A stretch of 45,327 nt of DNA, taken from assembly GCF_000315625.1 (NCBI RefSeq), contig NW_005434416.1, positions 1-45,327 on the forward strand. The letters are read 5' to 3'. Below, one piece after another: positions 1 to 44,522 of the stretch. Origin of the DNA: Guillardia theta CCMP2712. Lineage: Eukaryota > Protista > Cryptophyta. Position numbers and translations under genes: made by a program. How positions within the stretch are numbered: the first letter of the stretch is position 1; the number at the start of each line of letters is the position of its first letter. A model generated the notes under the pieces. That model was not told the origin of the DNA and searched no databases. It was given only the letters and a program-made list of their open reading frames with translations.

Positions 1-43
<43 letters not shown>

Positions 44-503
44 GTCCTGTCCTGTCCTGTCCTCTCTCTCCTCTTCCTCTCCTCTCTCTCTCTCCTCTCC
101 TTCCTCTCCTCTCCTCTCCTCTCCTCTCCTCTCCTCTTCTCCTGCATCGTTCGGAGTTGCATCAACTCGCTTCGTCGATTTTGACAACCATCATCGCTCT
201 TTATCATATGTTTGTCCCACATCCCCCCGCAACCCCGTACGGGTCCAGATCTGAGGCGGGTCGGTGATGACGTGAGGGAGCGAGCCAGGGAGCGAGCCAG
301 GGAGCGAGCGAGTGGAGGAGGAGGGCGAGGAGGAGCGAGTAGTGGGAGGCTTGTTCCCGAGGAGACGACTGTCGAGGAGAGCTAGGAAGGCAGGCAGGGA
401 GGGAGGCAACAAGGGAGGGAGGGAGGGAGCGGAAGTTGGAGCAAGGAGGGAGGCTCTAGCCTGTCAGACCTGCATGTAAGAAGGTAGGAAACGAACGAGG
501 GGA

Positions 504-3500
504 ATGAAATCCAGCAAGTCTCGGGGGTTCCAAGGAATCCTGGTGATATGCATCGTCGTCCTCCTCCTCCTCGCCAACCTCATGTGGATGAAGAAGGTGT
601 GCTGTCAGCGAGAAAGTCCGTCAAACTCGCCCTCTCATCCCATTGCCTCCCAGGTTCAGTCGGACCAGGCCCTCCATGATGCAGAGAAGCGGATAGTTGA
701 CTTGTCTTCCAAGATCAAAGTTCTTCAAGGGTCGCTGTCTACCTCTCAGGTGCGTCCTGAGGCAGCTGGGCGCCTCTGACCTGCAGCAGGTGGAGCAGGA
801 GACGGATCATTCGCGCGTCAAGACTCTGATGATGAGGATCAACGAGCTGGAGAGCAAGATGGGTATGCCGGCAGCCGCGTGCTCCTGCTCTGACTCATCT
901 GCCAGGATTCTCGGGCGCCAAGGACACTAGCTCAGCGCTGCAAGGCTCGCCCAACGCGCCTCCTCCCAGCATGTGAGGACGCTTGAGGACGCTGATGCTG
1001 CCGTCATGCGCTGTATGCAGTGTGAAGGGATCAACGGCTGGGAGAGGAGAGAGCGAGAGCGAGAGGAGAGAGAAGAGGTAACGAGCGTTCGTCTCACGAG
1101 ATGTCGTCATGACCGTGTCGGTGGTAGCAACGAGGTCAGTGCGAGCTTCCCCTCATCCGTCCAGCAGTCAGGTGGGACTTACCAAGTTTGACATGATCAC
1201 GGGCGTCTTGCCTTGTTGGAGCGCGATGTTCATACTGCGGTATCAGCAGGAGGAGAGGAGGCTCAAGTCGTCCCCATCATTATCTTTGCGTGCTGCCGAG
1301 CCAAGTACCTCGACAGGTAGAGCTCTTGTCCCCCCCAGCGCACCTGAGAGCTCCTTGCTTCCAGGACCCTCAGCATTGTGTTGGAAAGACTTCCGAAGCA
1401 GAGCAAAGTCAAGTTTGACATCATCGTCTCCCAGGATGGTATCCTCCTCCTCCTCCTCCTCCTCCTCCTCCTCCTCCTCCTCCTCCTCCTCCTCCTCCTC
1501 CCCTCTCTCGCCTCTCCTCTCCTTATCCTTCTCGTTTTTCGCTTCCTCTCCTTCTCTTTCCGTCAAATTTCCTTTCTCTGCTCCCGTCTTTGCTTCTTTC
1601 TTCTCTTCTTCTCTGCTCTCCTCCTCTCCCTTCCTCCGATTTTCGCTTCCCTTCTTTTCCTTCCTTTCGCATGTCTCCTATCGCGTCCTGATGGAATATA
1701 TCAAGGTAATGATCCATCTGTGAAGAGCCTGATGCACACCAAGTAAGAACAACCTTCCTTCAACCCACTCAACCTCTACACCTCCTCTCCTCAACCTTCC
1801 TCATCTCCCCCCACCCTCCTCTCACCCACAACTCTTCCCGTCTCTCCCCCTTCTCCCGCCTCTACTTTCTTCCTTCTCTTATCCTTCTTCTTCTTCTTCT
1901 ACAAGTCACCTTCGACTGCTTGTTATTTCTCACCTACCTCCCCTCTGCCTCTTTTCTCCCTCCCTTCCTCCTGTCTGCCTCCTCCTCTGCGCTTCTTCTT
2001 CCTTCCTCGCACTTGTCGCATGCGAGCAGCGGACTGACTGGCGCAGGTATGCAAACATAAAGTTCTTGGAGCACATGGAGCAGGTGGACCTCAGCACAGC
2101 CGGTCCCCAAGAGCAGGTAGCAGCACGATTTCTAGTGGCTAGTTGACGAAGAAGCATGCCAAGTTGAGAATGAGAGAGGAAGAGAGTGGAGGGAGGATTG
2201 GGGTAAAGGAAAGAGGAAGAGAGAGGAGGGAGGATTGGGGTAAAGGAAAGAGGAAGAGAGAGGAGGGAGGGAGGGCAGGGGGGCAGGAGTAGAGGGAGAG
2301 GAGGGAGGAGGAGTGGGAGGAAGGAGATTGTTATTGACAGAGAGGATTTTAGTTTATTTTGTGTTTCTCCCTCAGCACAATGTCGTCACTAGTCATTTGC
2401 AGGCGAGTTACTATCGCATCGCCCAGCACTATGGCTGGTGCTTCAGCAAAGTGTTTGCGGACCAGGTGGGCCGAGAGCTGGAAGGGTTTGACAAATCTGA
2501 CGTTAGATGGCCCAGAGATACGAGTGGGCGATCGTTCTTGAGGATGGTCAAAGTCGCACGTGCGAGATTCTCTTGCCTTTGACTCTTGACGGGCAGACTT
2601 GGAGGTCGCCGTTGACTTCTTCGAATACATGATGGCTGCTGCGGGCCCCCCCCCCCCCCTCCCCCCCTCGCTGCTGCTGCTGCTGCTGCTCCTCCTCCTC
2701 CTCCTCCTCTCCTCTACCCATCTCCTCTCCTCTTCTCACTTGTGTAACTCCCCGTCACATCTTCATGACCTGGTTGTCCTTAGAGCTTCTCAAGAAGGAT
2801 CCTACTCTCTGGACTGCGACTGCCTGGAACGACAACGGCTTTCCCTCCTACTCTCATGTTGGTTCCTCCTGACTGTCCTGTACTCTCCTCCTCTACCCTC
2901 AACAATTCTTCGTCCTCCTCCACCCTCCTCTCTCATTGTTGCCTTTGCTACTCTTCTTTCACCACCACCTCCACACCAACCCTCCTCCCTCCTCCCTCCT
3001 CCCTCCTCCCTCCTCCCTCCTCCCTCCTCCCTTCTCCCTTCTCCCACTCGTCCTCATGCATTCACAGGATCCTCACAAACTTTATCGCTCCGATTTCTTC
3101 GGAGGACTGGGCTGGCTGCTCACCCGCAAGCTCTGGCAAGAGTTAGGACCCAAGGTCCTCCTCCTCCCCCCTCCTCCTCTCGCCTCCTCTGCCTCCTCCT
3201 CCTTTCTTTCTTCCTCCTCCGCCTCCTCCTCGGTTCCTCGTCCTGTGCTCCTCTCGCCCTTCTCTTCATTGTAATCTCTCTTCCCCTCTCCCTTCCTCGA
3301 CTCTCTTCTTGTGCTTCTTCCTCCTAAAGTTCCTGCCTGCTCTCCTGCAGTGGCCTAAGGCGTACTGGGACGATTGGATGAGGTCAAAGCGCATGGAAGG
3401 AGAAGCAAGAGTAACTTGCACGCAGAGAGCCGAAGCAGAGGATGGGGAGAGCATGTATCCGACCACAGATCTCACGGACGGTGAGGAGGGGGAGGGGGAG

Positions 3501-5026
3501 GGGGAGGAGAGCAAGGAGGAGAAACAGGAGGATTTACAGAAGGAAAAGGAATGCAGGAGGATAAGGGGCCAGGGATTGACTGGATGGAGGGGGAGGGAGG
3601 GAGGGAGGGAGGGAGGGAGGGAGGGAGGGAGGGGAGGGAGGGAGGGAGGGAAAGATTTGATGTGTAGATATTTGTGGTTTCTGTTGAAATTTGAAGATCA
3701 CAAGAAACTGCAGGTGACATTTGGAAAGGAAGGAACAAGTAACGGGCAGGTCAAGACTACAATGTCCCCCTTCCGCCCCTGCCCCTGCCCCTGCCCCTGC
3801 CCCTGCCCCTGCCCCTGCCCCTGCCCCTGCTCCTGCTCCCCTCTGCGCTCGCTTGACAGGCAGGTTTGCAGTTTTTCGATAGTCACCTATCAAAGATGGT
3901 CCTGAATTCCGTGGTAACTCTCATTGCAGCTCTCCCTCCTCCTTTGGCTCCTCCTCTTACTCCTCCTCTTGCTGCTGCTGCCCCTGCTCCTGCTCGTTTC
4001 TCTCCTTCCCCTGTGCTTCACACCCTCACTCTCCTTCCCCTGTTCACGTCCTCGTCTACTCTCTTCCTCTTCCTCCCTCCGACTCTCCCTCTTGATCTTG
4101 CCATCTCATCTCGTTCCTTCAGCATATCGCATGGACCACAAAAGATATCTCCTTCCTCCTCAAAGAAAACTACGACGAGCAGCTCAGGAGGCAGGTGGAG
4201 GAGGCCCCGCTAGTCGGCCTGCATGACTCTCGAGGTTCTCTCCTCCTCCTCCTCCCAGTTCTGCACACGCTCCTGCTCTGCCTCTGCCTCACCTCCTCCT
4301 CCTCCTCCTCCTCCTCCTCCTCCTCCTCCTCCTCCTCCTCCTCTTCCCCCCTTCTTCCTCCCCTTCCTGCTTCTCTAGATCTCATGAAAGCTGGGCAGCT
4401 ACCGGCAAGATTTTCTACAAAGACCACCCGAGCTTCAAGGTTTTGGCGCAGAGTNNNNNNNNNNNNNNNNNNNNNNNNNNNNNNNNNNNNNNNNNNNNNN
4501 NNNNNNNNNNNNNNNNNNNNNNNNNNNNNNNNNNNNNNNNNNNNNNNNNNNNNNNNNNNNNNNNNNNNNNNNNNNNNNNNNNNNNNNNNNNNNNNNNNNN
4601 NNNNNNNNNNNNNNNNNNNNNNNNNNNNNNNNNNNNNNNNNNNNNNNNNNNNNNNNNNNNNNNNNNNNNNNNNNNNNNNNNNNNNNNNNNNNNNNNNNNN
4701 NNNNNNNNNNNNNNNNNNNNNNNNNNNNNNNNNNNNNNNNNNNNNNNNNNNNNNNNNNNNNNNNNNNNNNNNNNNNNNNNNNNNNNNNNNNNNNNNNNNN
4801 NNNNNNNNNNNNNNNNNNNNNNNNNNNNNNNNNNNNNNNNNNNNNNACGGGGGGGGGGGGGGGGAAGAGGACGTGGAGGGGGAAGTGAAAGGGGGTGGGA
4901 GGAGCGAGGAGGAGGATGAGAGGAGGAAGCAGGGAGGAGGAGAGAGGAGGTGACTTGAAGCCGCAGGACATTGTGATCGTCCAGCGAGCTGCAGATCGAG
5001 TGCTCTACCTAGTGAAGAAAGAATAG
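504..5026 (+). CDS. MGAT1: Alpha-1,3-mannosyl-glycoprotein 2-beta-N-acetylglucosaminyltransferase (GnT-I, GT13), multi-exon; part lies in an assembly gap
   Basis: N-terminal signal anchor (ILVICIVVLLLLANLMW) and coiled stem. GT-AG exons then encode VVPIIIFACCRAKYL, FDIIVSQDG, SYYRIAQHYGWCFSKVF, AIVLED|DLEVAVDFFEYM (DxD-type EDD), DPTLWTATAWNDNG, LYRSDFFGGLGWLLTRKLWQELGPK, WPKAYWDDWMR and TFGKEGTSNGQ|FFDSHL. Last exon DIVIVQRAADRVLYLVKKE* follows the N gap. These are diagnostic GT13 motifs. Confidence 0.93.
4455..4846. other. Assembly gap (N run) inside the GnT-I gene
   Basis: Run of 392 n. Confidence 0.99.
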
Positions 5027-5231
5027 AGAAACAACACCAACCCATGCTCACTCGCTTCTTCCTCTTCTGTCCTCCTGCTCCTCCTCTCCTCCTCCCTGCT
5101 TCTCCACTCCCCTCCACTTCGCCTCATACCCAGTCTCCCCCTTTGCCGTCATTGCATGGCAAATCGCATCGATACTATCACCACCCCTCTTTTTCCAGGT
5201 CACACCACCGGTAGTGACTCGATCATCGGGA

Positions 5232-6185
5232 ATGGCAGGGAAACCAGGGCCCCCGGGAGAGGAAGGGAGAGATGAGGCAGGAGGGGGAGGGAGGGAGGAG
5301 GAGAGGAGAGGAGAGGAGGAGGAGCGAAGAGAAGGAGAGAGCGGGGCTGGAAGCGAGCAAGGGGGAGAGAGAGCCTTGAACGGGATCAATCACGATGAGA
5401 GGAAGAGGAAGGGAGAGGAAGAGGAGGACAGAGAGAGCAAGAGGGCCAAGGGGCAGGACGATGGAGGAGGAGGAGGGGCAGAACAGGAGAGAGAAGGGTC
5501 TTCGGACAAGACTAAAGAGGTTCGACGGGAGAGCACAGCTTGCAAAGCATTGTCGCAGATCTTCCGAGGGATGGCGCAAGGGAACGTGAAGGAGGAAGGA
5601 GCAGGTTGCATGATCGAGACCGCGCGAGCCTCTTCCATGTCCGACCAGGAAGTGATCGTGGAAGGAAGAGACGCGATACTGTCCGAGCTCCAGCAGGCAA
5701 CCGACAACTCAGTGAAGGACAGCAAGGTGCGCGTGCTCGCACGACTGAGCATGGAGACGATGGAAGACGACAGCTCGTCTCTCTGCCTCCTCGTCCTTGC
5801 AAGCTCCAAGAACCCTCTCTCCCTTGCCTTCTCCTCCTGCTCCGTCGTGCTCGCTCTGGCTGACAGGCAGCAGCTGGTTGAGGTAGGGAATTCTTGACCT
5901 CCCACCATGCTCACTTGCTATGCAGTTGTGGGTCGGTGACTATGGGGAGACGAAAGAGGAGGAGGTGAGGAGCAAGGAGACGATGATGCGATGCCCGTGG
6001 TGGAGGGACGTCGTGAAGTTGCTCAGGTTTTCTCTTCCGATTGAAACAGAGTCGGTAAGAGAAGGAGGAGAAGAGGAGGAGGAGGAGGTGGTGGTGGTGG
6101 TGGTGGGATGTTGAAGGTTGTGAAGATCGAACTTATTGATTCGGGATGATGATGATAATGGTGGTGGTGGTGGTGGTGGTGGTGG

Positions 6186-6265
<80 letters not shown>

Positions 6266-7535
6266 CGCATAATGATAATGATTGTTAGAGCCTGCGGCAA
6301 TTGCAACCTGATCGACTCGTCTTACTGCAGAATGTCCATTTTGAACTTGCAAGGAGAGAGCAAGAGACGGGAAGTCTGACCATCGACTGCTCGTGGGAGG
6401 TAACGTTGAAACGTTTGGCCGTTACGATTGAGACAGAGGAAACGGACAGGCCAGAGTGATCGGAGCGACACCCACATCCCTGCAGGAGGAGGAAGAGAAG
6501 TTACAACGAGAACAAGTTGAGAAGTCGATCCTAGGTGAAGGAGGAAAGGGAGAGAGAAGAGGAAGAGGGAAGGGGTGGGAGACAGTATAGGAGGGAACAG
6601 GGCAGAAAAGGGGACGCGCGTCAGGGTAGAGGAGGGGAGAGTAGGAGGGAGACGAGGGAATTCAAAGGAGGTAGAACAAGTGTAAAGGAGGTAGAGGATG
6701 AGGGGAGGCTGACGAGGAGAATTGGGGGAGGAAGTGAAAGAGGAGGACATGATTGGTGTCATCAGCGTTCGACAAGGTCAGGTCGCATCTTTCGAGCGAC
6801 AAGAAGTTCGACAAGTCCGCTCCTCTTCTCGTCAAGGTAGACGCTTCTTCCCCCTGGCAGCCCCTGACCGGTAAAGCAGATGATCAGCTCGGATCTCAGA
6901 CAGGAGAATGCGAGCAAAGCTCTTGAGGCAGTCAGAGAAGCTATCGGAACAGGTGTGAAGAGAAGGAAGAGGACTGGGAGGAGGAGGAGGAGGAGGAGGA
7001 GGAGGAGGAGGAGGAGGAGGAGGGACATCGGTAAGGTGAAAGAGAAAGACACTTCAGAGGAGGAGGGGCAAGGGATGGGGAGAGGGAGGAGGAGGATACT
7101 CTGAGATCGCGTTCAGGGGAGCGAGCATTCGCAGACAGCACAAGATCTTTGATCAAAGAGATCATCGACAGCGTCACTAACAAGGTCAGTCAGTGCTGAG
7201 TTGCGCGTCCGTGAGCTCATGTCGGGTCAGTCGGACATTTTCAAGACGGTCACTGGCGACTTTGAGGCCTTGATCAAAGTCTGGAGCATCCTCTCTCACC
7301 TCTCCCACAAGCTGCGCACTGACGACTCGTTCGCGTACGCGAATGCGGCGAAGGAGGTGAGGGAGGAATGGGAAGGAGAGGGTGCGAGCAGGGAGGCGGG
7401 AGGGAAGTGGCAGCGATGGAAGGAGGACGTAGACGCAAGGAAGACGATGCACAGAGAAGATAAAGATGATGACGGAGGTGGCAGAGGAAATAGAGATACA
7501 AAAGTTGGTGGTAGTGATTGAGGTGGCGTAGGGAT

Positions 7536-8357: not shown

Positions 8358-9352
8358 CCGGCCCCTGAGCCTTCAGTGTGGCGGCCCGGGGCGGCCCTCG
8401 GGCCCGGGCCGGGCCGGCCGCACTGACTTGAAGGCTCAGTGTAACCGGGCTTGAGGACAAGCAATCATTGAATCATGTTTCAAGTCCGTTTGGACTCTGA
8501 GAGTCGGTACCGTACAGTCACATGCCATGACTCGATGATCGGAACGGAACTTGACACAGTGGCTTTACTCAAAGTGAGTACGGTCCGAGGGGGCGTCACT
8601 GTAGTTTGTCATTGGGATGACTAGTAGGCCTCCCGGAGCCTCGGAGTCCCGGACCACCCAGTGCACACTGTCAGGTGACGCCGGTGGGCTGTCGGACCGT
8701 ACTCAACTGGTGACCCGGCGTGCCGGGGGCCAGTGTGACGGAATACAAGTTTGTTAGACTTGTACTAGTCCAAAGTCACGCAGATATCACATCGACCTTA
8801 GTTGTAGGGGACCTTAGTAAGACGGCTAGGAAAGCCCCCTCTTCGTCCCACACGCTACATGCCGCCTTGAAACACGTAAGTCGTCTTGGTTTACAGGAGA
8901 GTTTTTGTTAACTCGGCGCTATCTGACTGGCACGGCTGGCATACGTTCCATCACAGTGACCCTGGGCGCGCCGGCCGACCGTGCCCCGTGACCGTACGGT
9001 ACGGTACTAGACGCCGGGTCGGCGGTCGGACAAACTCAGACACGCTCGGTCACTGACGTATCGGACTGCCACGCTAGTGCGGCGGCCCCGGTCCGGTACG
9101 GTCGTCGGACGGCACTGCAGGCTTCACGGGCCGGGCGCGGCCCGGCCGTGACGTGTAGCCTGGGCTGGTCTTTTGACTCAAACTCCTTAGTACGCCGAAG
9201 AATGCTGACTGACTTGACTGACAATGCGGCCCAAAGTTAAAAGTCTGTAATAAATTCACTTATGAGATGTTGGTGCTGCCCGAAATAGATTACACGGTTG
9301 GAGCGTTGACTAAACATTTGTACGAAGTCTTTTTTTCCGTTGCTTGTGAGAG

Positions 9353-9373
9353 TTTAACTTAACTTTGAGTAAA
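9353..9373 (+). repeat. Short copy of the dispersed terminal motif
   Basis: TTTAACTTAACTTTGAGTAAA, identical to part of 40573-40613. Shorter copies at 13698-13714 (+) and 8563-8575 (-). Confidence 0.8.
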
Positions 9374-9619
9374 ACTCCAACCACGCAAGTGACCAGGCAT
9401 ACACCCCCCTGAAAGTAGGTCCGCAGCAAGGATACGGCTGCAGGGGGTAGGGTAGTGAAATGCACCAATGACCAAAGAACTTCGGAAGGGGGAGTTTGGG
9501 AGGGGTACTTGGTGTAGTCACCAGCAGGAGACGTGGGGGGTCTGCAACAAAAACATTATAAGTCAGCAAGTTTCGGAACTGCGGTAGTGGGGTGATAGGG
9601 GTGGGGTAGGGAAGGGTAG

Positions 9620-9627
9620 TATAAGTA
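9620..9627 (+). promoter_or_regulatory. Putative TATA box of small gene copy A
   Basis: TATAAGTA ~45 nt before ATG 9667, preceded by a GGGGT-rich tract. The paralogue has the same arrangement. Confidence 0.55.
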
Positions 9628-9666
9628 CGCGGCGTTCTGCGAGGTTGAGGAATCCCTGCCGACAAC

Positions 9667-9859
9667 ATGGTGAGATGAAAAATGAAGAGAATGTGCGCAA
9701 TGATGGTGACAAACGCCCGCCTGATGCGATGATGCAAGGTCTTGATGATTGCTGCTGCTTATGATAATGATAGAGATATGATGATTATCATGATGATGGA
9801 TATATGATGAGGATGATGACAACGACGACGACGACGACAAGGATGAGGATGAGGATGAG

Positions 9860-10279: not shown

Positions 10280-10708
10280 ACATAAACATCGGATGCAGAC
10301 GGTTGATGCCAACCTCCCCACTCACACTGGGAACGAGAGACTAATAAACGTCTTTCTATTCTATTACCTACATGTCTCTCTTGTACGTGCGAGCGTGATG
10401 TGAAGATGGCTTACGAAGCCTTGAAGACGATGAGATGCTTGACTCGAGCAATCGTTATCACACAAGCACACACCAGTCGATGTGACCTGCCTTGACTGTG
10501 ATACTCGCAAGGGCGACAGCACCGATGGCTGCGAGACAGAGTCTGATGTCTGCTTGCCTGCTATCATCACTGATGAGTGTGCGAGGCTTGTTGTGGGTGC
10601 TGCCAGGTCGAGCACAGGGATACCTGGGAGAGCAACACGAGGCTGAACGGCTGAGTCATGGCTGCAACGTTGAACGAAAGCTTATCGGATGAAGATGATG
10701 TTATGGAG
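9667..10708 (+). repeat. Direct segmental duplication, copy A (copy B = 14395-15340)
   Basis: Intron ends, exon 2 and ~430 bp of 3' flank align between copies. The first ~125 bp after the stop codon are identical. Confidence 0.95.
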
Positions 10709-10849: not shown

Positions 10850-13595
10850 TGCTGCAGGATTTCCCTCGGTCCTCCGCTCCCTGTATCTGCTCTGCGTCTG
10901 CACGTTCAACCATTGCCACTAGTGGAGGGAACCCATAGCGTGATGCCAAGGGCTTTCTGTCTTGCTTGGCATACCACCAACAGACAACTGGCTGCATTCA
11001 ATTCTTGGCTTGTCTTGGACTGAATCCAGTGAATCAAACAACCAGCAAGTCAATGCAGCAACTCACCGCTCCTCGATTGCACTGGCATCATGCCTCGCAC
11101 ATCATCTCACCTATGGTATCGGAGCACGGCCAGTTTGAGCATCACAGCTTTGAAAACACATAGTGAAATCTCCTTGACGCTGCTGACCTCCTTATGCCCC
11201 GCCCCTTTGCTCGAAATTTCCAATTCGATTTGCCAGGTAAGGATCAACACTGTCTTTGCAATAGTCTGAAACCATCCTCTCAGTGTAGCCTGCTGGTGGT
11301 GAGGGCCGGCACATGAAGGGAACAACTGTAGTAGTAGTAGTCTCAGACCAGACCAGGGCGAAGAAACGCCTTCAGCGAGTTCAGATCCTCCTTGCTCCTG
11401 AGCATCGTTGTGAGAATTTTTCGCAAGGAGTCCTCCCGTATGTTTATCAATATTATGGCAATGCAGGCAAGTTATTTCTGAAACATCAGCGAGAGACTCG
11501 GTCTTTTTCGGCCACTTCTGGGTTTCCCAGGGGGGCCCCTTGGCGATGGCTCTCTTTGCGCACACCACCTTCCCCTCCCTGGTCAAAATCGCAGAGACCT
11601 TTCCCGACTGTGTCTTCCCGGCCTATGCGGATAACATGGCCGTTTTTGGAAAGCTCTCTGTTGCCACACAAGCCACTGCATCGCTGGTTGATACGTTGAA
11701 ACAAGAGCTAGGATTGGAGATTCGAACATCAATCTAGCGAGTAACGGGCCATCCAAGAGCATATTTGCAGTAGGTACCAGGGCTTGCAGCAGTTTGCCTT
11801 GCAAGGCCAGGAGATCATCCTTGGAGGTAAGTCCTTTCAGCAAGAGTTTATCGCTGCAAAGGTGAAATTCCACCCTCCAATGCTTCTTACGTGGAATCTC
11901 CCCGGCCTTGACAGCTGCCCAGTGCAAGTGCTTTGACGTCGCGAGTTTCCGTCTTCTTACGAAGGTGTTTCAGTGGCCACAGCACCAGGCACAGGAGGGT
12001 TCATCCGACCTGCAACCTGCTCCTGACACCCCTCCGTCTGACCTTCAGTTCGCCTACTTCAAACGTCAGTTGCCTTTTGTGCTGGAGGAGATGGGTTCAC
12101 CCCGGCAGGAGGTTGTGGCCTACACCGCATTCTGGTCTGCGACTGCCAAGTTTCTCAAATGGGCGGGAGACATTGCCATCTTCCAGCATTGGATTTTACC
12201 TACACCGCCACTCTTCCCGGAGTCCACCGGATCAATTCTGGCACTGAACTTCGAATCCACCAACCGCAGCAAGCGGACGCTGGGGATGTTGTCCCCATGC
12301 TGGCTGCCTTCTTGGACACTCACAGGCACTTGATGGAGCAGGCAATCTCGGCGTACACCTCCTTGGCGGAGCTTCCTCAGGCGTGCGACAATGACTGGAT
12401 CCCCTCGCCTGATTTGTTTGGGACGTCTGGTAGTGTGCTTTTCATCCCCGCTCAGCAGGAGCTCACGGCTCAATCCCTCATGGAGTTTCCTCGGTTCTGC
12501 AGTATTCGAGCTAACAATGATGAGCGCCAGCGATCTTTGTTGGCACATGAACTTTGTCTCAGTTTACCCCTCAGCGCACGATCTGGCACTCAATTATGTA
12601 AAGTACCAACCTTGGGATCTTTGAGCAGCAGCCCATCAGCTTGGTGGCTGCCGCTGACAAGTTTCTTCATGGACTGCCCATTGAACTCCCGCCGCACTGC
12701 GATACATGTCACCTTCTTCTCCGTCGTCCTGGAGGGACTACTCACATGGCAACCTGCAGGCACCGCAGCCCATTATGGACTGATGCCCATGAGAAGTGCA
12801 ATGCCGTCCTCAGTACCCTCATCAAAGATTCAGGAGTGAGATGCCGCGTCGACGTGCAAGGCGTTCCCGGCACCAGGCAGAACGTTTCCCAACATGGCCC
12901 TGAAGATCATCACGTAGGGAATTTTGAGCTCCCGCAATTGCAGGCCACTGGAGGCGGATGGCATGGGTTGATCCTTGACTTCAGCATGTCACATGTTTCT
13001 GACTATGATGGAATACCGGACCAGGCTCTGAGCAAACTGCAGCAGCACAGGGAGAGATCCGAGGGCATCGTAATGCATATGCTCAGCACGTCCCGCCAAA
13101 GGCCTTTCTTCCCATTATCGCCAGCACTGATGGCCTCTTGCAGGACGATGCGTTGCGCTTTCTGTGGTGGCTGGCGGATCGCTCGGCGAACAAGGAAACG
13201 GCAGCGCTGGATGGTCTCTCGGCCTCGCAAGACGTCTCAGGTGATCCGACTTGCAAACACATCCGGTCCAGGATCTTCCGTCAGCTCAAGGCCTCCCTGT
13301 CACTCGCTGCCATAATCGCAGGTGCGTTCAGGTATGCGTCTCATTCCTTCAGCGGCGGCCACAGCGACATCGCTTGCATTGCGCCGGGGAATGGTCCTGC
13401 TCGAAGTTGAGTGAAGGTATCAGTTAAGTTTGGGGGACAGCAGTCGGAAGGATGAGTTGGTTCTCGCTGTCTTTTTTTCTCTTCTCGGTGTGTGGGAGTG
13501 AACTTTACTCAAAGTTAAATTAAAATCAGTACGAGGACAATCAAACTAGTAGGGACAGGGCCGATTGTCCTGGTACTGATTTTAACTTAACTTTG
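10850..13595 (+). mobile_element. Degenerate non-LTR retrotransposon of the RLE type (CRE-like), frameshifted; 5' boundary uncertain
   Basis: Read across frameshifts: RNAFSEFR (RT DxxNAF motif), LPYVYQYYG..SATSGFP(Q)GGPLAMALFA, VFPAYADNMAVFG (YADD-like), zinc knuckle CDTC..HMATC..H, endonuclease-like GPEDHHVG..LILDFSMSH, and C-terminal PFFPIIASTDGLLQDDALRFLWWLA..IFRQLKASLSLA. A 3' UTR follows. Confidence 0.85.
13501..13595. repeat. 33-bp inverted repeat (13510-13542 / 13563-13595, 2 mismatches) with 20-nt spacer, built from the dispersed terminal motif
   Basis: CAAAGTTAAATTAAAATCAGTACGAGGACAATC ... GATTGTCCTGGTACTGATTTTAACTTAACTTTG. Confidence 0.95.
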
Positions 13596-14355
13596 GCACT
13601 GCGCTCGTCAGGCTCCGGGGCCGACCCGGTCACCCACAAAAAGGCTTTTGGGTACGAACTTGGTCTGAAGCAAAAAAGATTGTAAGAGTGACAGTAGTAA
13701 CTTAACTTTGAGTAGTATTAAAAATGTCAGTTGTTGTTGACCAAACATAAAATTCGAATAACCCGCTTCACTGGTGACCACCCACCCCTTCTCCCAGTAC
13801 TTCGGAGTAAACTTACGGTGACTCAGCTACCCACCACCCAGTCTGCCATGCTGACCCTGCGTCTACCACCATCAACACTTGGAGGGGCAGGCTGTGGCTG
13901 TCACAGGCGATTTTATTAAGAGCGTTATCAGTCTGTCTCGCCCTATGCCTGACCTCTTGATGCCGAGGTACCCCACCTCCCATGCCCGTCACACCTGAAC
14001 CGTGGGGTGAGTCACGGGACCAGTTCAGTCAACTTTCCTAGAGTACCGGTGGTCACTAAGTCCCGAAATAGATTTTTGTTCATAGAAGTGTTCTCGGTAG
14101 GTCCCGGAGTCCGCCCCCTCCCCCCTCCCCCTCCGGTACGGGGTAAGCCTGAGAGGGGGGGTTCCCTAGTGATAGTACCGGGTACAACGGTACCCCAGCG
14201 GTGAACCGGGTCTATTATCTTGCCTGACCTGGGAAAACGTAGAGGTGGGGGTACTAAGTAGTGAGGTACCATGATAGATTCGGAACTGTAGGGGTCAGGG
14301 TCGGGACTTGGACCATTATTGCGCAAGAGGAGAGGGGTGGGATAGGGGACAGCAG

Positions 14356-14363
14356 TATAAATA
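14356..14363 (+). promoter_or_regulatory. Putative TATA box of small gene copy B
   Basis: TATAAATA ~40 nt before ATG 14395, preceded by GGGGTGGGATAGGGG. Confidence 0.6.
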
Positions 14364-14394
14364 CGAGTGCAGATGAGATATCGTCACTGAGAAA

Positions 14395-14903
14395 ATGGTG
14401 AGATGAAAAAAGATGAATAGAATGCGCGCAATGATGCTGACAAACGCCCGCCTGATGCGATCATGCAAGGTCTTGATGAACACAAAGAACGACGGAGATT
14501 ATGATGGAGATGATGATGGAGACGAATCGATGCCTGATGAATGTGACGCATGATCATGATGGATGACTGTCTTGGAATGGGAAGCATGTGTTTGTCTCTG
14601 ACATTTGACCTCCAGTTCTCCGACATCGTGCACGCTCAGGAGCTGTATAGCACTTACACTATCAGTAACACCTGGGAGCCCTATTTCGAATCCAAGTGGC
14701 CCACTACTACCATCAGCAACAACAGATGGAATGATGGCAACAGGGGAGCCTCTTGGAACTACGGTGACAACTTTGGCGGAGGTAACGATTACCGCACCGA
14801 TCACACCATCTTCGGCAACTATGGTGTCACCGACAGTGTTTACAGTGGAAGCAACCCAATCAAGCTGTGCTCTGGCACGCACAACGCTGAGTGCTCCGGA
14901 TAA
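14395..14903 (+). CDS. Small Gly/Asn/Trp-rich protein, copy B (96 aa); exon 1 = ATG only (14395-14397), exon 2 = 14616-14903
   Basis: Same splice signals as copy A. Product M-FSDIVHAQELYSTYTISNTWEPYFESKWPTTTISN...KLCSGTHNAECSG*. Confidence 0.78.
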
Positions 14904-16887
14904 ACATAAACATCGGATGCAGACGGTTGATGCCAACCTCCCCACTCACACTGGGAACGAGAGACTAATAAACGTCTTTCTATTCTATTACCTACATGTC
15001 TCTCTTGTACGTGCGAGCGTGATGTGAACATGGCTTACGAAGCCTTGAAGACGATGAGAAGCTTGTCTCGAGCAATCGTTATCACACAAGCACACACCAG
15101 TCGATGTGACCTGCCTTGACAGTGATACTCGCAAGGGCGACAGCACCGATGGCTGCGAGACAGAGCCTGATGTCTGCTTGCCTGCTATCATCACTGATGA
15201 GTGTGCGAGGCTTGTTGTGGGTGTCGGCAGGTGCTGCCAGGTCGATCGCAGGGATACCTGGGAGAGCAACACGAGGCTGAACGGCTGAGTCGTGGCTGCA
15301 CCGTTGAGCGAAGCTTATCGGATGAAGATGATGTTCTGGAGATGATAATGTTAATGATGATGAAGATGTAATTGATGATGTAATTTCTGTTGTTTCTTGT
15401 TTTGTTGATGATGGAGGACTGAGGAGGAGATCATCGGATAATGATCACGGTTTTTCATCAGACATCCGAGTATAAAATGCTGTCACTGTGACATACTGTC
15501 CAAACGGGTCCTGCAGCTTCTGTCTCCGAACCCTGATACATCCGACCGGAGCTAAAAGCCGCCAAAGTTGAATTACTAGTTAGCAGCTTCACTGTTACCC
15601 TGTGAATGCTCGACATGCAACCTCGATAGACTCGTAGAAGCATCGGGCTGCTGAGTCACTAAGACTGAGGGATCTTAAAGATCATCAGGGATCATGAGGC
15701 ACATCGGATGAGATGCTAAGCTTGTTGAACTGATCATACCGTAGTACTGATCAGTAGTACTAGTAACTGAGCCGCTGACTTGATACGGGCCTGCGGCGGC
15801 CCGGGTCCGAGTCAGTGGACTCCGAGTACCGTACACTTGTGACATCATGACTAGCACCGTGATGAGTGGCCCAGCACAGCCTGGCTGCACACCGTGGCAC
15901 CAGGCTTCCTCCGGGAGTCCGCCGGTCCGGTCGGATCAGTTCGAAGTCCAGGCTCGGAAGTTCTCAGATCCGATCGGATCGTCGGCCACCGCGAGTCCGA
16001 GCGGGCCCCTGAGTCCTGCTCAGCCATGATACCGGGTCACTCTGTTCGCTGTCAGAGTCTTTTCTCTTCCGGTCCTGCTCAGGCTAGCCCGCCCGGGCCC
16101 GGACCGGGCCCAGAGTCACTGCCGCCTGGCCGCCCCGGCCGGGCCGCCGCGGCCCGCCGAGCCGCCGCGCCGACGCCTGGCTGCCGCCGAGCCTCGGAGT
16201 TCGGAAGTGACTTGCAGAGCTGACTGCTGACAAGACGAAGGGGGGCAGAATAGTATTAAGCGTCGCCAGGAGATCTGAAAATAATTGTTTTCAAATTAAT
16301 TTTTATTGGCTGACAGAGATACTGAAAATTTTCTGTAATATATTGGATTGAGAAAGTATTAATAAAAGTTTTCCTATATAAAAAAATCCATTTTTAGCTA
16401 ATCTTCTTCATTACTACGGGTGTTCCTATAACCCTTTAGCTGAAGGAGTTAAATTCAAAGCAGTTCCTTCACAACCCGAGTTACATTGCTGACCGAACCG
16501 CCGTGATTTTACTATACCGAACCCCCTATTTGACCTTGAACTACCCGGCCCTATGTATGATGACAGAACCCCCAAACGCAAAGTACCCCTTATTCCAAGA
16601 GCTTCACCCCCAACGGGGTGGGGGTGAAGTAAAGAACCTTTCTCCATAGAGCAAGCGAGAGGAAGAGGAGAGGACGACGAAGTCGAAGAGGAAGAGGAAG
16701 AGGAAGAGGAAGAGGAAGAGGAAGAGGAAGAGGAAGAGGACAGGGAAATCAAAGAGGGGATAGCATTGCACAGAACAAGACTGGACACGCGGATTCTAGC
16801 ATATCAGGTTACTGTCTACTGTCTGCTGTGATAAGATTGGTGGGAGAACTTTTTATTGGAGTAGCCAGAGGGATATAGCAACGTAAA

Positions 16888-17550
16888 GTGAAAGCCCAAG
16901 TTAACAGAGTATACCAGCGCGCAATGGAAGGAATGCAACTGAACGTCGACGGTCGGTACTTGCCGGAAGCTTTGGACTGGGGGTTCGATCATATTCCCAA
17001 CGAACTTCATGGCTTGCAACATGCCAAGGCTGTCGAAACGAGGCAGAAAAGACTGGACAAGGAGGAAGAGGATGGACCTGTGGCGGCAGAGGCGATGAGC
17101 CATCGGCGCGACGTTGGAGGGGATCTCTCGTGCGAGGGGCTGAAGAGTAGGTCGCCAGAAACATTTGCTGCCATGTTCTGCTCAAGGTTCGACGATGAAA
17201 CTGAGGGGGAGAGGCTAGAGAACGTCTTTGCGAGTGAAAGTTACAACACCGAGCTCGGATCAAGCGCAGAGAAGGATAATCTTGACGAGTGTGGGAAGGA
17301 TTGGTTGGAGGGGAAACTGGATCTGGATGCAGGAAGCGACGAGGAGGACGAGGAGGACGAGGGGGAGCTTCTGACGGCCTCAGAGAGGAGAACCTGCCTG
17401 TATCAGTCTTCTTTCCGGTTGGGAGGAGCACCAGAGAGGAAGCAGATACAAGGTAGCGGATCTTTCAGGAGCCGATACAACCGGGAGATTGGCAAGTCAA
17501 TCACCGACGCCTTCATTGGCCTGATACAGCACTCGAGCCACTGTGAATGA
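16888..17550 (+). CDS. Possible exon(s) of a hypothetical acidic protein; downstream pieces to ~20 kb contain stops and may be a pseudogene
   Basis: 220-codon open frame that is not an SSR. No recognisable family motif. Confidence 0.3.
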   Translation: MKAQVNRVYQRAMEGMQLNVDGRYLPEALDWGFDHIPNELHGLQHAKAVETRQKRLDKEEEDGPVAAEAMSHRRDVGGDLSCEGLKSRSPETFAAMFCSRFDDETEGERLENVFASESYNTELGSSAEKDNLDECGKDWLEGKLDLDAGSDEEDEEDEGELLTASERRTCLYQSSFRLGGAPERKQIQGSGSFRSRYNREIGKSITDAFIGLIQHSSHCE

Positions 17551-19636
17551 CAAGAAAATAAACTTGTAACGCAGTCCCTTTCGCACTCTCTCTCCGCCTC
17601 CCTCCTATCCCGATCTCTCTGTACTCTTCCCCGTCCCCTTCGCACTCTCACTGGCTCTCCCTGTCATCATTGTCGCCCTCAAGGAAGAGGAGCATTGGGA
17701 GTGATGGAGTGGGCCCTGGTGGATGGTCAGAAACCTCAAAGGGAGGAGTAACAAGAGGAGGGCGTGAGACGAAGCGAGTTGTTGGAGGGTACCTGATCTT
17801 CATCGGAGGTTTCCCTTGCGGAAAGCATTCGGTAAAGATGATTTCAATGAGCTGGAGAAAGGTAAGGAACTCGCAACAGCAGATCCGAGTAGCAGAGCGA
17901 GTAGAAAGACTGAGAAAAGAAGCCGAATGCCGGAGAGAAGAGAGAGAGTCAAGAGAGGTTTTGGAAGAGGGCAAGGGGGTGGGGGAGATTTAAGACAGCA
18001 ACACAACGATGCAGAGTTTGGCGGACCTGCTTGAACTTTGACCGTAGATACAACTGCCACCAAGATAAGAGTAAAAGAAACAATGATCATAACAAGGATA
18101 TCATGTGGTGTGTGCGTGATGATGATGTCTGAGCGGACGATTGAGATGCTTTGACGATGAAGACTCAGAAGTCAAGGAAACTGAATGGGACACGTAGAAA
18201 GAAAAGACGTGAACGAGGACAAGAAGGGCGACGAAAAAGATGAGGAGGAGGGAGAGGGAGAGGGAGAGGGAGAGGGAGGAGGGAGAGGGAGGAGGGAGGA
18301 ACCTGCAATTCATGTGTCTGTTCCATGAAGTAAGTTTTGTCTCCAGGAATGTCGTCGACAGCCTTTAAACGGGTGAGATGTTTGTCTCCCTCTCTTTGCC
18401 TTCACCTCTGCTACTTTCTCGTCCACCAGATCCATCCCTCCTTGATCTGACAGACGTCGCAGTCAGATGCAACATTCAACGACTACCATGCTGCTGCTAC
18501 CATGCTGCTGCCTCAGCCTCCTCATTTCATATCAAGCCTACTTCTTATTGACCGCAGATTCTGCTTTACTTCCTCCCCTCCTGACCGACTCCCCCCTCTG
18601 CCTCCCAGGCTCCTCCTTCTCCGCTTGTCTTCACCTTCGGCGAGAGTATCGGTGAGCGAGTGGTAGAGGAGGAAGGCGACGATTCTGCTGCTAGTCAAAC
18701 TTGACGGGCATCAAACAGACTCACTTGAGGTTGTTGCTGTCAACCCTGCTGGGAACTGTGTTGGGCCCGATGTTGTACTGAAGTCACAACCATCAACATC
18801 GTCTGACACCCTTTGCACCATCACGATCCCTGCTGCTGCTGCTGCTGCTGCACCTCCACCTTCCGCCCCCCCTCCTCCCTCCTCTTCCTTTCCTTTCTTT
18901 TCTCCTGCTGCAACCCCGTTTTTCCGTGCTTTTAACTCTCTATACCTTCCAAGGAGTCAGAGTGAGCTGGAGGATGAGAATACGAGTGAAAAGAAATTGA
19001 GCCATGAGAAACTTTGCCTGCAACCAACGTCAAGTCCTCCCTTCCCTTACGTTTCTGTCTGCTCCTCCTCCTCATAATCGTCTTCTCCTCCTCCCTTTCT
19101 TCCTCTTCCTCATTCAACGTCCTCTCTTGCTCCTTCTGCTGTCCCCTTTATCAATTCATCTCGTTCTTCACCTTCCTTCCATCAATTTCTCCTGCTCTCA
19201 TGGTTTCCCAGTCAAGCTCGAGCACCTGAAAAGTGTCATCAAAAATAACTCCAGGCTGAGGAGAAGGTGCAGGAGGAGAAGGAGGAGGAGGAGGAAAAGG
19301 AGGAAGGGAGGAGGAGGAGGAGGAGGAGGAGGAGGAGGAGGAGGTGCAAAAAAAGGGGGGGGGAGGTGGAGGTGCAAGAGGGGGAGGAGAGACTTGAGAA
19401 GGGCAGGTCTGACAATGTTGAGTTGATGATGAAGGTTTGGAGTGGAGAAGGGGATCAAGGAGAAGAGGGAAGACAGGGAGCAGGAAGAGGAATGGATGGC
19501 AAGAAAACCTTCTCTTCGACCGGCATGAGATACTTTTCAGAGGATGCAGTCAAATCGCGAGAGCTCCCCTGGATGGATGGTTTGTCTGGATATTTCTGAG
19601 AGAAAATGTGAGCAACCGAGCGGGAAGTTGGGATAA

Positions 19637-19673
<37 letters not shown>

Positions 19674-19690
19674 GATGATGATGATGACGA

Positions 19691-19762
<72 letters not shown>

Positions 19763-20081
19763 TGATGGGAGGGAGGAGGAGGAGGATGGGAGGAGGATGG
19801 GAGGAGGAGGAGGGGGAAGATGAGAAGAATGATGAGAATGGCGATGACGAGAAGGAGTTTCTGCGTCATTACCTGTCTGTGTGCCACCAACCTGCGAAGA
19901 AACTCGACGATAGCTGAGGGAATTTTATCCTGCCAATTTACTGAGAGGATGAACAGCAAACAAATGGATAGAGACATGCCAGACACAACGAAAACTTTGC
20001 AAAAGAGGAGGATGAGGATGAGGATGAGGATGAGGAGCAGGAAAACGAGGAGCAAGAGGAGCAGGGACATGACGATGAGGA

Positions 20082-20181
20082 NNNNNNNNNNNNNNNNNNN
20101 NNNNNNNNNNNNNNNNNNNNNNNNNNNNNNNNNNNNNNNNNNNNNNNNNNNNNNNNNNNNNNNNNNNNNNNNNNNNNNNNN
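20082..20181. other. Assembly gap (100 n)
   Basis: N run between microsatellites. Confidence 0.99.
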
Positions 20182-20200
20182 TAGGAGGAGGAGGAGGAGA

Positions 20201-20237
<37 letters not shown>

Positions 20238-20271
20238 GGAGGAGGAGGAGGAGGAGGAGGACGAAGAGAAC

Positions 20272-20307
<36 letters not shown>

Positions 20308-20399
20308 GAGGAGGAGGAGGAGGAGGAGAGGAATGTAGTAGTTATGCAGCAGTGATGAGTGAGGGGATGGGGAGGAGGACCTGTGTGCATGCTGTTATG

Positions 20400-21380
20400 A
20401 GAGCATTGATGATAGCTTTACATCGAGTTCCAAGCTTGAGGACTCGAGCAGTAACGTCACTCTGATATGCCATCAGCGAAAATCATCCGCATCCCTTCTT
20501 CCTCCTCCCCGTCCTCCTCCTAATCCCCATCCCTCTTAACCCCCCCTCGCGACCCTTCTTTTCCTCTCCCTGCCATTTACCTCCTCCTCCTCTCTCTCCC
20601 TCCTCTCTCCTCTCCCGCCTCCTCCTCCCCCTGCTCTCTTCCCCTCCCCTCCTTCTCGCTTCGCTTTCTACTGACCTCCGTCAGCCCAGTTTTCCACAAG
20701 CTTCCCTTGAACGGCGGCATGATCTAAGGCAGAAGGCTCAGCAGCACAAGGGAGGGGAGGAAGAGGAGGAGGAGGTCGAAGAGCAGAGGAGGAGGAGGAG
20801 GACAAGGGAAGCAGATGAGGAGAGGAGAGGCTTGAAGAAGTGAAGGAGCACACCCGACACAAACGCATGCGTGAAAGAAAAGAACGGAGTGACAGAGGCA
20901 GCACAAGCAACACAAGGCGCAGAGCAAGATGTACGGACATAAGGAGGATGAGGAGGACAGATGACGAGGAAGAGGAAGAGGAGGAGGAGAAAGTGAGAAT
21001 AGAAGCAGGAGATAGGGGGAGGAGGGAAGGAGAGAGCCCATGGTGCAGGAGATTGAGCAAGGGCAGAAGCAGGAGGAGGGGTAGGAGGAGGAGGGGAAGA
21101 AGGAGGAGGGGAAGGAGGAGGAGGGGAAGGAGGGGCAGGAGGGAGGGGCCAGGGGTAGAAATCACCTCTAGAGAAACACCAGACTCGAAGAGAAGAACGT
21201 TGATGACATGCTGACACACCTGCCGCGATCCAATGACCTCCTGTCCCTGTCCCTGTCCCTGCCGCTGCTGCCGCTCCTCCTCCTCCTCCTCCTCCTCCTC
21301 TTCCTTCTGCTGCTGCTGCTGCTGCTGCTTCTCTCGCGTCTGCTGCCGCAGCTGCCCCCGCTCCCACTTCCACACATTGT

Positions 21381-21412
<32 letters not shown>

Positions 21413-39275: not shown

Positions 39276-40430
39276 GGGCCGAGTCCGATCCAGGCCTCCG
39301 ACTGGCTTCAAGACTCAGGCCGCTCAGCCTAGTACGGTCCGCCTCCGACTTGGGGTGGCGGGCCTCCGACTCCCTCCGACTCTCTCCTCTGCCACGGACT
39401 CCATCGATGTGCCCGTCAAAATCGAAATCAGTAATTCCTTGCCGCTAGTAATGTTTGCGTTTCACTGTATACTTGCACCGCCACCGCTACGATACTCTTC
39501 ACTGCGGCTCAGCAGACTGCCTATACGCAGGCGAATGTCAGGTATATCCTGAGTCTGACAAGAACTCGTTTCTGGGTTGCGGCCCGATGCTATACAATCC
39601 GCTATCGCACATACAAATTCTCCGCACGACGATCCGTCTGACTGTTGCGGTACCTGTCACAGTGTGTCCGGGGTCGGAACGGTGTGTACAACTTGTCATT
39701 CGGCAACTCAGCTTGTCACCTTATCTGACGTCAGGTGTGAACGAGAACTCATGTTTGCACTCAACAATCAGTTTCAGTTTCATCCATGCTGGTTGCCAAT
39801 AGCTGGTTTCTGGTAGATTCAGCCTTCATTCATTTGACGCTGCCAATCCATTACCACAAAACCTGCGCGTTGCATGTACTTGCATCAGCGACAATCCGAT
39901 GAGTACAATATACATATCCACTTTCTATGTCCTTCGTACAATCCTTGTGCATGACTTTCATAGAGTCATATAACCTGGTAATAACCGTCAACGATACTGT
40001 ATGTCGCTGCTAAGTGATAATTTCATTACGTGACTGCCACATGACAAGCTGATCTCAGATCTATGGCAACGAGACCCCAATGCTCCTGTTCTCGGAGTAC
40101 TCTTCCCCTTCTCTCCTTACTTGGGACTCCCAGCGAACGGTTCGCTGCCTCTAACGTCACCTTCCATCCCGCTCGCCAGTTGAACAGAGAATGTAGGAAT
40201 CATCAGTGTCGAGTCATGTCAACACGATGTCCGTGGTTGGCCACCATATATGCCGCTTCATGCACTTGCAGCAATCAGCGTGCACGGAATCTGTCACCTG
40301 CAATGATGTGATCTGTCACACACCAGTCATCACCGGCACGTCACTGGCTTTGTTCGCGCACCTTATCTGCATCACCATAGTGGGCGATTTCCTGAATCAA
40401 TTTGGTGTACAGGTATGTCCCACAGCGCTG

Positions 40431-40613
40431 GTTAAAAATCAGTACGAGGACAATCAGGAGAGACGAGGAGGCTTGACTGTCGCACAGTCCAAACGGCGAG
40501 AAGAGAAAAGACAGCGAGAACCAAACCTATTCCTGCCGACTGCTGTCCCCCAAACTTAAGTACCAATGAATAGTTGTCCCAGTACTGATTTTTAACTTAA
40601 CTTTGAGTAAAGT
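40431..40613. mobile_element. 183-bp composite: reversed 3' end of the CRE-like element joined to a second terminal motif in the opposite orientation
   Basis: The reverse complement of 40497-40559 aligns to 13424-13487 (24-nt exact TTAAGTTTGGGGGACAGCAGTCGG, then TTCTCGCTGTCTTTT..CTCTTCTCG). Arms 40431-40455 and 40573-40613 are inverted motif copies. Confidence 0.85.
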
Positions 40614-41521
40614 AAGAGCTTGGTTTCTGTATATCGGATCCCGCAGTACGAAATGGCGGAAACCAGAGGCTGAGGATGCTGTTTGGACACGAGTGTCCAA
40701 TACGGAGAGCTCCCACTGCGACTGGAACTTGACACAAGTGCTGGAAACGTGGTGGCGATTTTCATGCAGTATATGCCAGCTTTCGAAGTGAGGATCCTGG
40801 ATTTTGTGGTTGTAAGTCGCCGCCTCCTCCCAGCGATAATGTGCAGTCAGCGATAGCAATTGACGAATCGGAAGGAGATGGCATGCCAGTATCCTCTTGC
40901 ACGTCACAAGTAGATGATGGGATAGGGGGAACAAGCTCGATGTCTCAAAATCCCACTGCTGCTGCAAGAACCAACAAAGCACCAGCAAAGAGAAAACATT
41001 CTTCTACAGAAGCTGAGTCTGCTTTGTGGGACAACTTACGTGTACAGGACGAAGCAGCGCTCGAAGCATCAGGGGAAGCTATCCGCGAGAATACGACATC
41101 GAAGAAGAGCAGGAAGATGTATACCAGCCCATGATACGTCTTCTGCAATGGCTCTTTGTCAACAGAAAAGAAGTTCTCACCAAGGAGTTGATGGAGCTCA
41201 TTGAAAGACAGAATATCACCAACTTGCACTACGTTCCCGATAAAGATCTACTGCATGATATCCTGACGCGTCGTGAAATCAAACCCATCGACTTTGAAAA
41301 TAAGGAATCAACCGACCCAAAGGGAAAATTTACATCCACAGACGTTTCCTTTCGTTTTCAGGACAACCTTCAGCAGTCATAGAGTGCACTAGAGCAATCA
41401 CTGCTGTGTTTACTAGAACACGACGAGGAAAGAATACTGAATAGAATACTGCTGTTGGCTTCTACATAAAAAGCCTTCTCCTGCTATTTCAGCCGGTAAC
41501 TCCCTCATCAATGTCGCCGCT

Positions 41522-44104: not shown

Positions 44105-44522
44105 GACAGCCAGTGGTAGCCATCCGCTTTCAGTGGTGCTTTGAAAAAAGTCGGTCTAATTTGAGATTATGTGATCAGATTAGAATATTATTGCAGATGG
44201 CTTGAAACTTATAACTTCCTGAACCCTACTAGGTGTGTCCGGTACGCTAATGTCGGTATTTTTCCCGGCGAAGTTCCCTAGCCAGTCATTCTCAATTGAT
44301 GTGTTGCTCTTGTGGTCCACCTTGTTATTCTGGATGTAATCTCTTAGGCCTGCCGTTCACAATATATCATCCATCTTCCATTCCTAAAAGCCTGAGATCT
44401 TTACCTGCCTGTTTCTGATTGAATGATACCTTATGTTGTTATTGCATTCTGTATCAATATACAATCGTTCTGCTAACCTTACAACCCCGGGTGTATAACT
44501 AAAGCAACACTCCTTCACCAAA

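Follow-up and report, generated by a model that had tools for sequence, protein, structure and literature searches.

The 45,327-nt contig NW_005434416.1 of the cryptophyte Guillardia theta CCMP2712 (hereafter the window, meaning this whole stretch of DNA) contains seven short copies of a sequence motif that we trace here to the 3' end of a retrotransposon that lacks long terminal repeats (non-LTR) and is about 4.33 kb long. An initial annotation of the window had listed all seven, and each is indeed there within 1-3 nt of the position reported. Their number is far above chance: the 12-mer AACTTAACTTTG has six matches in the window with at most one mismatch, against 0.19 expected, and a 21-mer of the motif has three matches, against none expected. 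An exact 13-nt copy, read directly, lies at 8563-8575 on the minus strand (element positions 4318-4330), and the chance expectation for a 13-mer in a window of this size is ~0.001. A solitary 22-nt stub on the plus strand at 9353-9374 (100% identity; element 4309-4330) was found both by BLAST and by direct reading. The other copies lie in or beside two inverted pairs. A scan of the window with Rfam matched no family, and the motif is therefore no known RNA gene.

Both pairs have the arrangement that the initial annotation described, with the 3' ends of the two copies pointing outward (tail-out) and a short filler between them. The first, pair A, consists of an inverted 41-nt stub on the minus strand at 13504-13543 (placed at 13501-13542 in the initial annotation; 95% identity; element 4289-4329; 3' end complete), a 19-nt filler at 13544-13562 with no relation to the element, and a 33-nt plus-strand arm at 13563-13595 (94%; element 4290-4323) that lacks the last 8 nt. 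A further plus-strand stub of 17 nt lies 102 nt past the pair, at 13698-13714 (100%; element 4311-4327). The left neighbour of pair A, overlooked in the initial annotation, is a 2.1 kb degraded copy of the same element that may also be its host. This old copy is 5'-truncated and occupies 11349/11367-13495 on the plus strand (element ~1853/1939-4248); its identity to the element is 82-91% when the full element is compared with the window by BLAST, and its last 700 nt are ~91% identical to young copies. It is frameshifted, its open reading frames (ORFs) are broken, and it stops 83 nt before the normal 3' end, with ~8 unrelated bases separating its end at 13495 from the inverted arm. The old copy thus breaks off at element position 4248 and the forward arm of pair A resumes at 4290. 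The right arm may be the old copy's own tail, and pair A fits a class of nested pairs described below, as a 41-nt inverted stub embedded in the tail of the old copy.

The left arm of the second pair, pair B, is a 129-nt minus-strand copy of the 3' untranslated region (UTR) at 40431-40559 (90.5%; element 4178-4314) that lacks the last 17 nt. Its outermost 25 nt are the annotated copy at 40431-40455, and the claim that a reversed 3' UTR continues from that copy is therefore correct. After a 14-nt filler (40560-40573) follows a plus-strand stub of 38-40 nt at 40574-40613 (92%; element 4292-4331) whose 3' end is complete. On its left the pair is flanked by another repeat family (40100-40426), of which two other copies were found (83% and 75% identity), both with matches ending at 40426; on its right lies a third repeat family (40645-40950) with at least 8 copies at 86-88% identity, whose matches start at 40645-40653. 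The earlier statement that copies of the motif lie at junctions between unrelated blocks holds for pair B in the sense that it stands between two repeat families, but this is equally the look of a transposon nest. On another contig, locus L032 has the layout of pair B with a different filler and different flanks, so this layout recurs independently. A paralogous empty site was found for neither pair: the right flank of pair A is unique, and the flanks of pair B are not contiguous elsewhere. The sequence differences between arms to which the initial annotation pointed (TACGAGGAC versus TACCAGGAC and versus TACTGGGAC) are present, but as evidence for two templates they do not stand, as they fit ordinary decay in copies that are ~10% diverged.

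When either window locus was used as a query against the Guillardia theta genome (87.1 Mb in 669 contigs), hundreds of matches were returned. Extension of the longest copies gave an element of ~4.33 kb whose first base is common to many copies, and which is present at full length at loci L063 and L064. Intact copies of 4.33 kb end in the motif, which is thus the natural 3' end of a reverse-transcriptase element, as had been proposed, and this end has no poly(A). Intact copies with some other terminus, which the initial annotation had named as grounds for refuting its proposal, are therefore not what the genome shows. The element carries one ORF of 1348 amino acids, with a stop codon 165 nt before the 3' end. 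Long copies are 97-99.8% identical to one another, indicating that the family is young. The databases contain a protein 100% identical to the ORF, listed as hypothetical and from Guillardia theta CCMP2712, and we found no description of this family of long interspersed nuclear elements (LINEs) in the literature.

The ORF matches RVT_1 of Pfam at amino acids 592-735 (E 6e-8), the only label returned for the protein by a protein atlas, and its reverse transcriptase aligns weakly with that of the Bombyx R2 protein (R2Bm, chain 8gh6_A; E 0.029). In the C-terminus, a CCHC-type motif precedes columns of conserved D, D-x-T and K..Y. A structural model of the last 349 residues (pLDDT, the predicted local distance difference test score, 62) placed R2 proteins at the first four ranks in PDB (9dou, E 4.5e-4; 9nl3; 9nl2; 8gh6; the R2 proteins of zebra finch, turtle and silkworm), followed by PD-(D/E)XK nucleases. 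Searches of the C-terminus by sequence were blank in both Pfam and the PDB sequences, so the assignment of an endonuclease rests on this medium-confidence model. Pfam detected no AP endonuclease (Exo_endo_phos) in the ORF or its relatives. By its modelled endonuclease type, the element is therefore a young, dispersed, R2-like non-LTR retrotransposon of the restriction-like-endonuclease (RLE) kind. In all four long copies (L061-L064; L063:7840-7880, ORF amino acids ~695-705), motif C of the reverse transcriptase reads YADN, not YADD. Among 153 retrieved homologues (P0003, P0005 and others), 28 of 53 motif C matches have (Y/F)ADN, indicating that the second aspartate is missing from a whole clade. 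The YADN motif might be linked to the very short copies that the element leaves.

The element shares with R2 and other RLE LINEs the single ORF with a central reverse transcriptase and, according to the model, a C-terminal CCHC motif and PD-(D/E)XK-type nuclease, as well as the lack of poly(A), a defined 3' UTR end at which copying starts and many 5'-truncated copies. It departs from R2 in having YADN instead of YADD and in the marginal level of similarity noted above. Elements of the CRE clade (CRE1/2, SLACS and CZAR) likewise lack poly(A). The Guillardia element resembles them in endonuclease type, single ORF and 3' end, but it does not lie in spliced-leader genes and the flanks of its copies are mutually unrelated. 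The label "CRE-like" given to it in the initial annotation is thus apt at the level of endonuclease type and does not extend to a spliced-leader target.

With at most one mismatch allowed, the genome contains 1433 occurrences of the element's terminal 20 nt, whereas the reversed control sequence does not occur at all. Aligned copies have a sharp common 3' boundary, and their coverage and similarity fall progressively upstream toward ragged 5' ends that cluster just past the stop codon (element 4155-4181), at 4286-4301 and at 4309. Most copies are 5'-truncated stubs of ~20-165 nt. Truncation at variable points with a common 3' end is what target-primed reverse transcription predicts, and the data show that the element copies itself in this way, starting at its tail. 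Because most copies are cut short, either just past the stop codon (~150-165 nt long) or at only 20-45 nt from the 3' end, stubs that consist of the tail alone number well above a thousand in the genome. Of 30 solo copies of at least 80 nt, 13 are flanked by target duplications of 6-11 bp, compared with 4% under the null, and stubs of only 19-21 nt in tail-in pairs (3' ends pointing inward) carry duplications of 7-10 bp.

According to PMC4640811, most RLE LINEs target specific repeats. The Guillardia element is unlike them in that it is not site-specific, with at least 1433 tails at unrelated sites and target duplications of 6-11 bp. The flanks of 130-150 copies had no sequence in common, which marks the insertions as dispersed, and neither these flanks nor the Rfam scan of the window pointed to spliced-leader RNA genes as sites of insertion. 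The copy flanks show no positioned target motif, their only preference being for G and A in the first two to three bases: G occupies the first position in 63% of copies, and the second and third positions are rich in A. Such a bias fits an end that varies slightly, or else microhomology to the tail of the RNA. There is also a mild excess of GTGAC- and ACTCA-type words. At loci L002-L060, flanks within 100 nt of stubs have a GC content of 0.59, compared with 0.52 at distances of at least 500 nt, and many of the stub flanks at these loci contain CCGGGCC-type runs. Inspection by eye revealed no non-element body shared by the short stubs; an all-versus-all comparison of their upstream sequences was swamped by neighbouring arms.

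Stubs are not spread evenly but accumulate in limited, repeat-rich islands. Counting exact terminal 14-mers over the whole genome, we found 80 tandem, 42 tail-out and 23 tail-in pairs of copies no more than 300 nt apart, compared with ~3.6, ~1.8 and ~1.8, respectively, under uniform spread. The ratio of 80:42:23 is close to the 2:1:1 of randomly oriented neighbours. Much of this excess reflects regional clustering, which is about 5-10 fold: among 42 unique 3-kb loci, 8 extra tails were found 300-1500 nt from the central copy where 1.7 were expected (~5x), and the far end of the distance distribution of tandem pairs lies ~10x above uniform. Atop this regional clustering there is a local excess of ~2-4 fold in every orientation class. 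It is strongest for tandem pairs, of which 45 of 80 are less than 100 nt apart, many abutting directly or with a few extra bases.

As all three orientations are enriched alike, tail-out pairs do not appear to be a special product of break repair. We consider it probable that they are ordinary clustered stub insertions and that no dedicated break-capping process is involved. According to this interpretation, the same or adjacent sites within islands would be hit repeatedly on either strand, and the reverse transcriptase would sometimes jump between templates. Repeated hits combined with template jumps would then give rise to tandem, tail-in and tail-out pairs. Pair A would be an inverted 41-nt stub in the tail of an older copy, and pair B would be two stubs that landed between the ends of other transposons. 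Reverse transcriptases of the R2 type are known to perform end-to-end template jumping, and such jumps account for the arrays in which stubs follow one another head to tail and the joints contain few additional bases or none, although jumping alone gives no inverted arms. The term for this behaviour also appears in PMC6895275.

The diversity of these arrangements also bears on whether the pairs could be the terminal inverted repeats of a non-autonomous DNA transposon, a miniature inverted-repeat transposable element that captured a piece of the UTR. Such an origin would explain the inverted arrangement and nothing else. Arm lengths range from 14 to more than 150 nt, inner ends are ragged, fillers and flanks are unrelated between loci, and the same tail is found solo, in tandem and in tail-in pairs. 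Constant termini and a fixed-length duplication, which had been named in advance as the signature of such an element, were found in none of the pairs, and we regard this candidate as refuted by the variable termini, with next to no probability left to it.

The initial annotation had offered a different origin for tail-out pairs: both 3' ends of one double-strand break, whether pre-existing or made by the element's own staggered cut, would prime reverse transcription on element RNA, and the two cDNAs would then be joined. The geometry of the pairs fits, with element 3' ends facing the flanks and short filler between the arms. If the break were the element's own staggered cut, however, the pair as a unit should be bracketed by a duplication of 6-11 bp. 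The tail-out set was made up of 40 pattern-derived loci plus the pairs already in hand, and 42 pairs were tested for duplication. Around the pair as a unit, a duplication score of at least 6 was reached in 0 of 42 cases (null 1.9%), and an exact duplication of at least 5 nt was present in 1 of 41 (null 5%). A score of at least 6 was reached around the minus arm alone in 19% of cases and around the plus arm alone in 14% (null 2.3% for each). Roughly one single arm in four is flanked by a 5-11 bp duplication of its own, among these one of 11 bp (L086), several of 9 bp (L102, L107 and L049) and several of 7 bp (L080, L087, in its nested arm, and L097). An arm with its own duplication implies that the "filler" is target DNA and that the arms are separate endonuclease-type insertions (L080, L081, L082, L049, L086 and L087). 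In the tight pairs L049 and L082, the target sequence is present three times, to the left of the pair, between the arms and to the right of the pair, which is the pattern that cleaving one site twice would leave.

Several other pairs are nested, with a stub inside the 3' UTR of another short copy. The host is interrupted between element positions 4258 and 4259 without loss at L078 and at 4271-4273 at L077, and the nested stub of L087 carries a 7-bp duplication. Priming from both ends of a break cannot make tandem or tail-in pairs, yet their enrichment is of a similar order. Equality of arm length loses its significance (p 0.27) when the 21-nt alignment-boundary class is left out, and the right arm of pair A can be explained as the old copy's own tail. 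As a general mechanism, then, capping of both ends of a break is not supported, given the enrichment of the other two orientations, the lack of pair-level duplication in the face of frequent duplications around single arms, and the nesting of several pairs. One locus, L089 (contig 2, 123553-123911), was excluded from the set because all of it, flanks included, is one palindrome: a near-perfect palindrome of ~250 nt that takes in two LINE tails of 21 nt each together with ~23 nt of flanking DNA to either side, and which is either an inverted duplication or an assembly fold-back.

Several observations nevertheless weigh against a purely ordinary origin of the pairs, and most of them favour priming from both ends of a break for a subset. 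As claimed in the initial annotation, neither window pair has a target duplication, at the level of the arm or of the pair, and in each pair one arm is shortened at its 3' end (stopping at element 4323 in pair A and 4314 in pair B), a feature also seen at L032, L014 and L033. Absent duplications and shortened 3' ends are also expected of endonuclease-independent insertion at a break. Duplications are scarce among solo stubs shorter than 80 nt as well (1 of 11). When pairs are measured by the gap between insertion points, tail-out pairs are more numerous than tail-in pairs, 39 to 23. Tight tail-out pairs, with an inner gap of no more than 40 nt, number at least 12-16 where ~1-3 are expected after a 5-10x regional correction, although that correction rests on small samples, and the loci inspected included 11 of the 23 tail-in pairs and no tandem loci. 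The arms of tight pairs almost always carry the same tail variant (in pair A, a minority form with four Ts), whereas looser pairs often mix variants, and some tight pairs may therefore arise in one episode. The two arms of L086 match the reference at 100% and have their 5' ends at element positions 4272 and 4274. Balancing these points against the duplication data, we think it doubtful, at roughly one chance in a handful, that tight pairs, including both in the window, were formed by priming from the two ends of a single break. Similarly tentative is the broader suggestion that tight tail-out pairs were made in one episode on tail-only RNA and that a weakly processive YADN reverse transcriptase supplies frequent templated patches at breaks.

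Two known processes offer points of comparison for pairs of this kind. In twin priming by L1, the second DNA end serves as a primer for reverse transcription too, and this produces inverted segments (PMC2912911). The inverted part of such an L1 insert comes from further upstream on the same RNA and one duplication surrounds the whole insert, whereas in the Guillardia pairs both arms are 3'-terminal and duplications around the pair occur at the null frequency. Endonuclease-independent LINE insertion and capture of cDNA at breaks are known for L1 in repair-deficient cells and for Ty1 cDNA in yeast. The two window pairs share with these events both the lack of duplication and the shortened 3' ends, but the family at large is unlike them in having endonuclease-type duplications, even on stubs of 19-21 nt.

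The structure of the element RNA provides a further perspective on where copies end. A terminal hairpin had been claimed for the motif. A stem of 4-5 bp at most is possible there, and the predicted fold of the entire 3' UTR is not better than that of shuffled sequences (z -1.28). A stem-loop at element 4209-4276 (L063:9858-9925) has a predicted energy of -22.1 kcal/mol (z -2.4), and the 5' ends of stubs pile up 5-25 nt on the 3' side of its base. Of 11 breaks within the UTR in 3'-shortened or interrupted copies, 7 fall at 4246-4275, and the nested sites L077, L078 and L087 add to these. We suspect that the stem-loop stalls the reverse transcriptase and promotes its dissociation or template switching.

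Such stalling could in principle connect pair A with its 2.1 kb neighbour as the product of one insertion, in which reverse transcription would have begun at the tail of the RNA, halted ahead of the stem-loop, continued for 41 nt on an antisense template and returned to the RNA at 4248. Besides the stem-loop and the breakpoint cluster, this possibility is favoured by the capacity of R2 reverse transcriptase to jump between templates, by the coordinates of the junctions (4248 is the last position of the old copy, and the right arm picks up at 4290, a single base away from 4289, where the inverted arm has its inner end) and by a minority four-T variant that is common to both arms of pair A. However, the inverted arm has the last 8 nt that are missing from the right arm, and so cannot be a snap-back of that arm's cDNA. 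The there-and-back path is elaborate, and free antisense templates are without direct evidence. The causes of the clustered breakpoints are also mixed, since they include deletions as well as the insertion of a DNA transposon at L003. There, a LINE tail copy is interrupted by an element of ~1.1 kb (L003:391-1487) whose terminal inverted repeats are 22 bp long (AGGTGTGTCCGGTACGCTACTG) and which is accompanied by a 3-bp duplication of ACT. We therefore judge a single switching event at pair A to be improbable, clearly more so than the priming of two break ends, and favour the nested insertion of a separate stub. The terminal repeat of the L003 transposon also occurs once in the window with two mismatches, at 44231-44252.

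The window has several other repetitive features. The old copy and pair A are bracketed by direct repeats at 10300-10708 and 14924-15341 (94.7% over 419 nt), and likewise by repeats at 9594-9748 and 14330-14479 (78% over 158 nt), which may have arisen by local duplication or belong to a gene segment that is repeated. An ORF of 860 amino acids on the minus strand (41522-44104) contains, at 43024-44079, ~20 tandem units of 54 nt (18 codons). Low-complexity tracts of the purine/pyrimidine trinucleotide type (GAG/GGA, GAT and CAG) are very abundant at 1-7100, 16600-21400 and elsewhere, and a short run of N is present near 20082.

Taken as a whole, the pattern that first drew attention in the window is ordinary retrotransposon biology with a few unusual details. 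One LINE family, whose tail occurs more than 1400 times in the genome, accounts for a motif that might be misread as a signal, as a spliced leader or as a scar of repair. What is unusual for an RLE LINE is its nearly indiscriminate landing, its presence mostly as stubs of 20-165 nt, with target duplications even on those of 19-21 nt, and its membership in a YADN clade. Should the priming of both ends of a break prove true for the tight pairs, the family would provide an RLE-LINE example of break sealing templated by a reverse transcriptase. The element may in any case offer a natural model for abortive target-primed reverse transcription, and possibly also for how the length of new copies is set by RNA structure and polymerase processivity.

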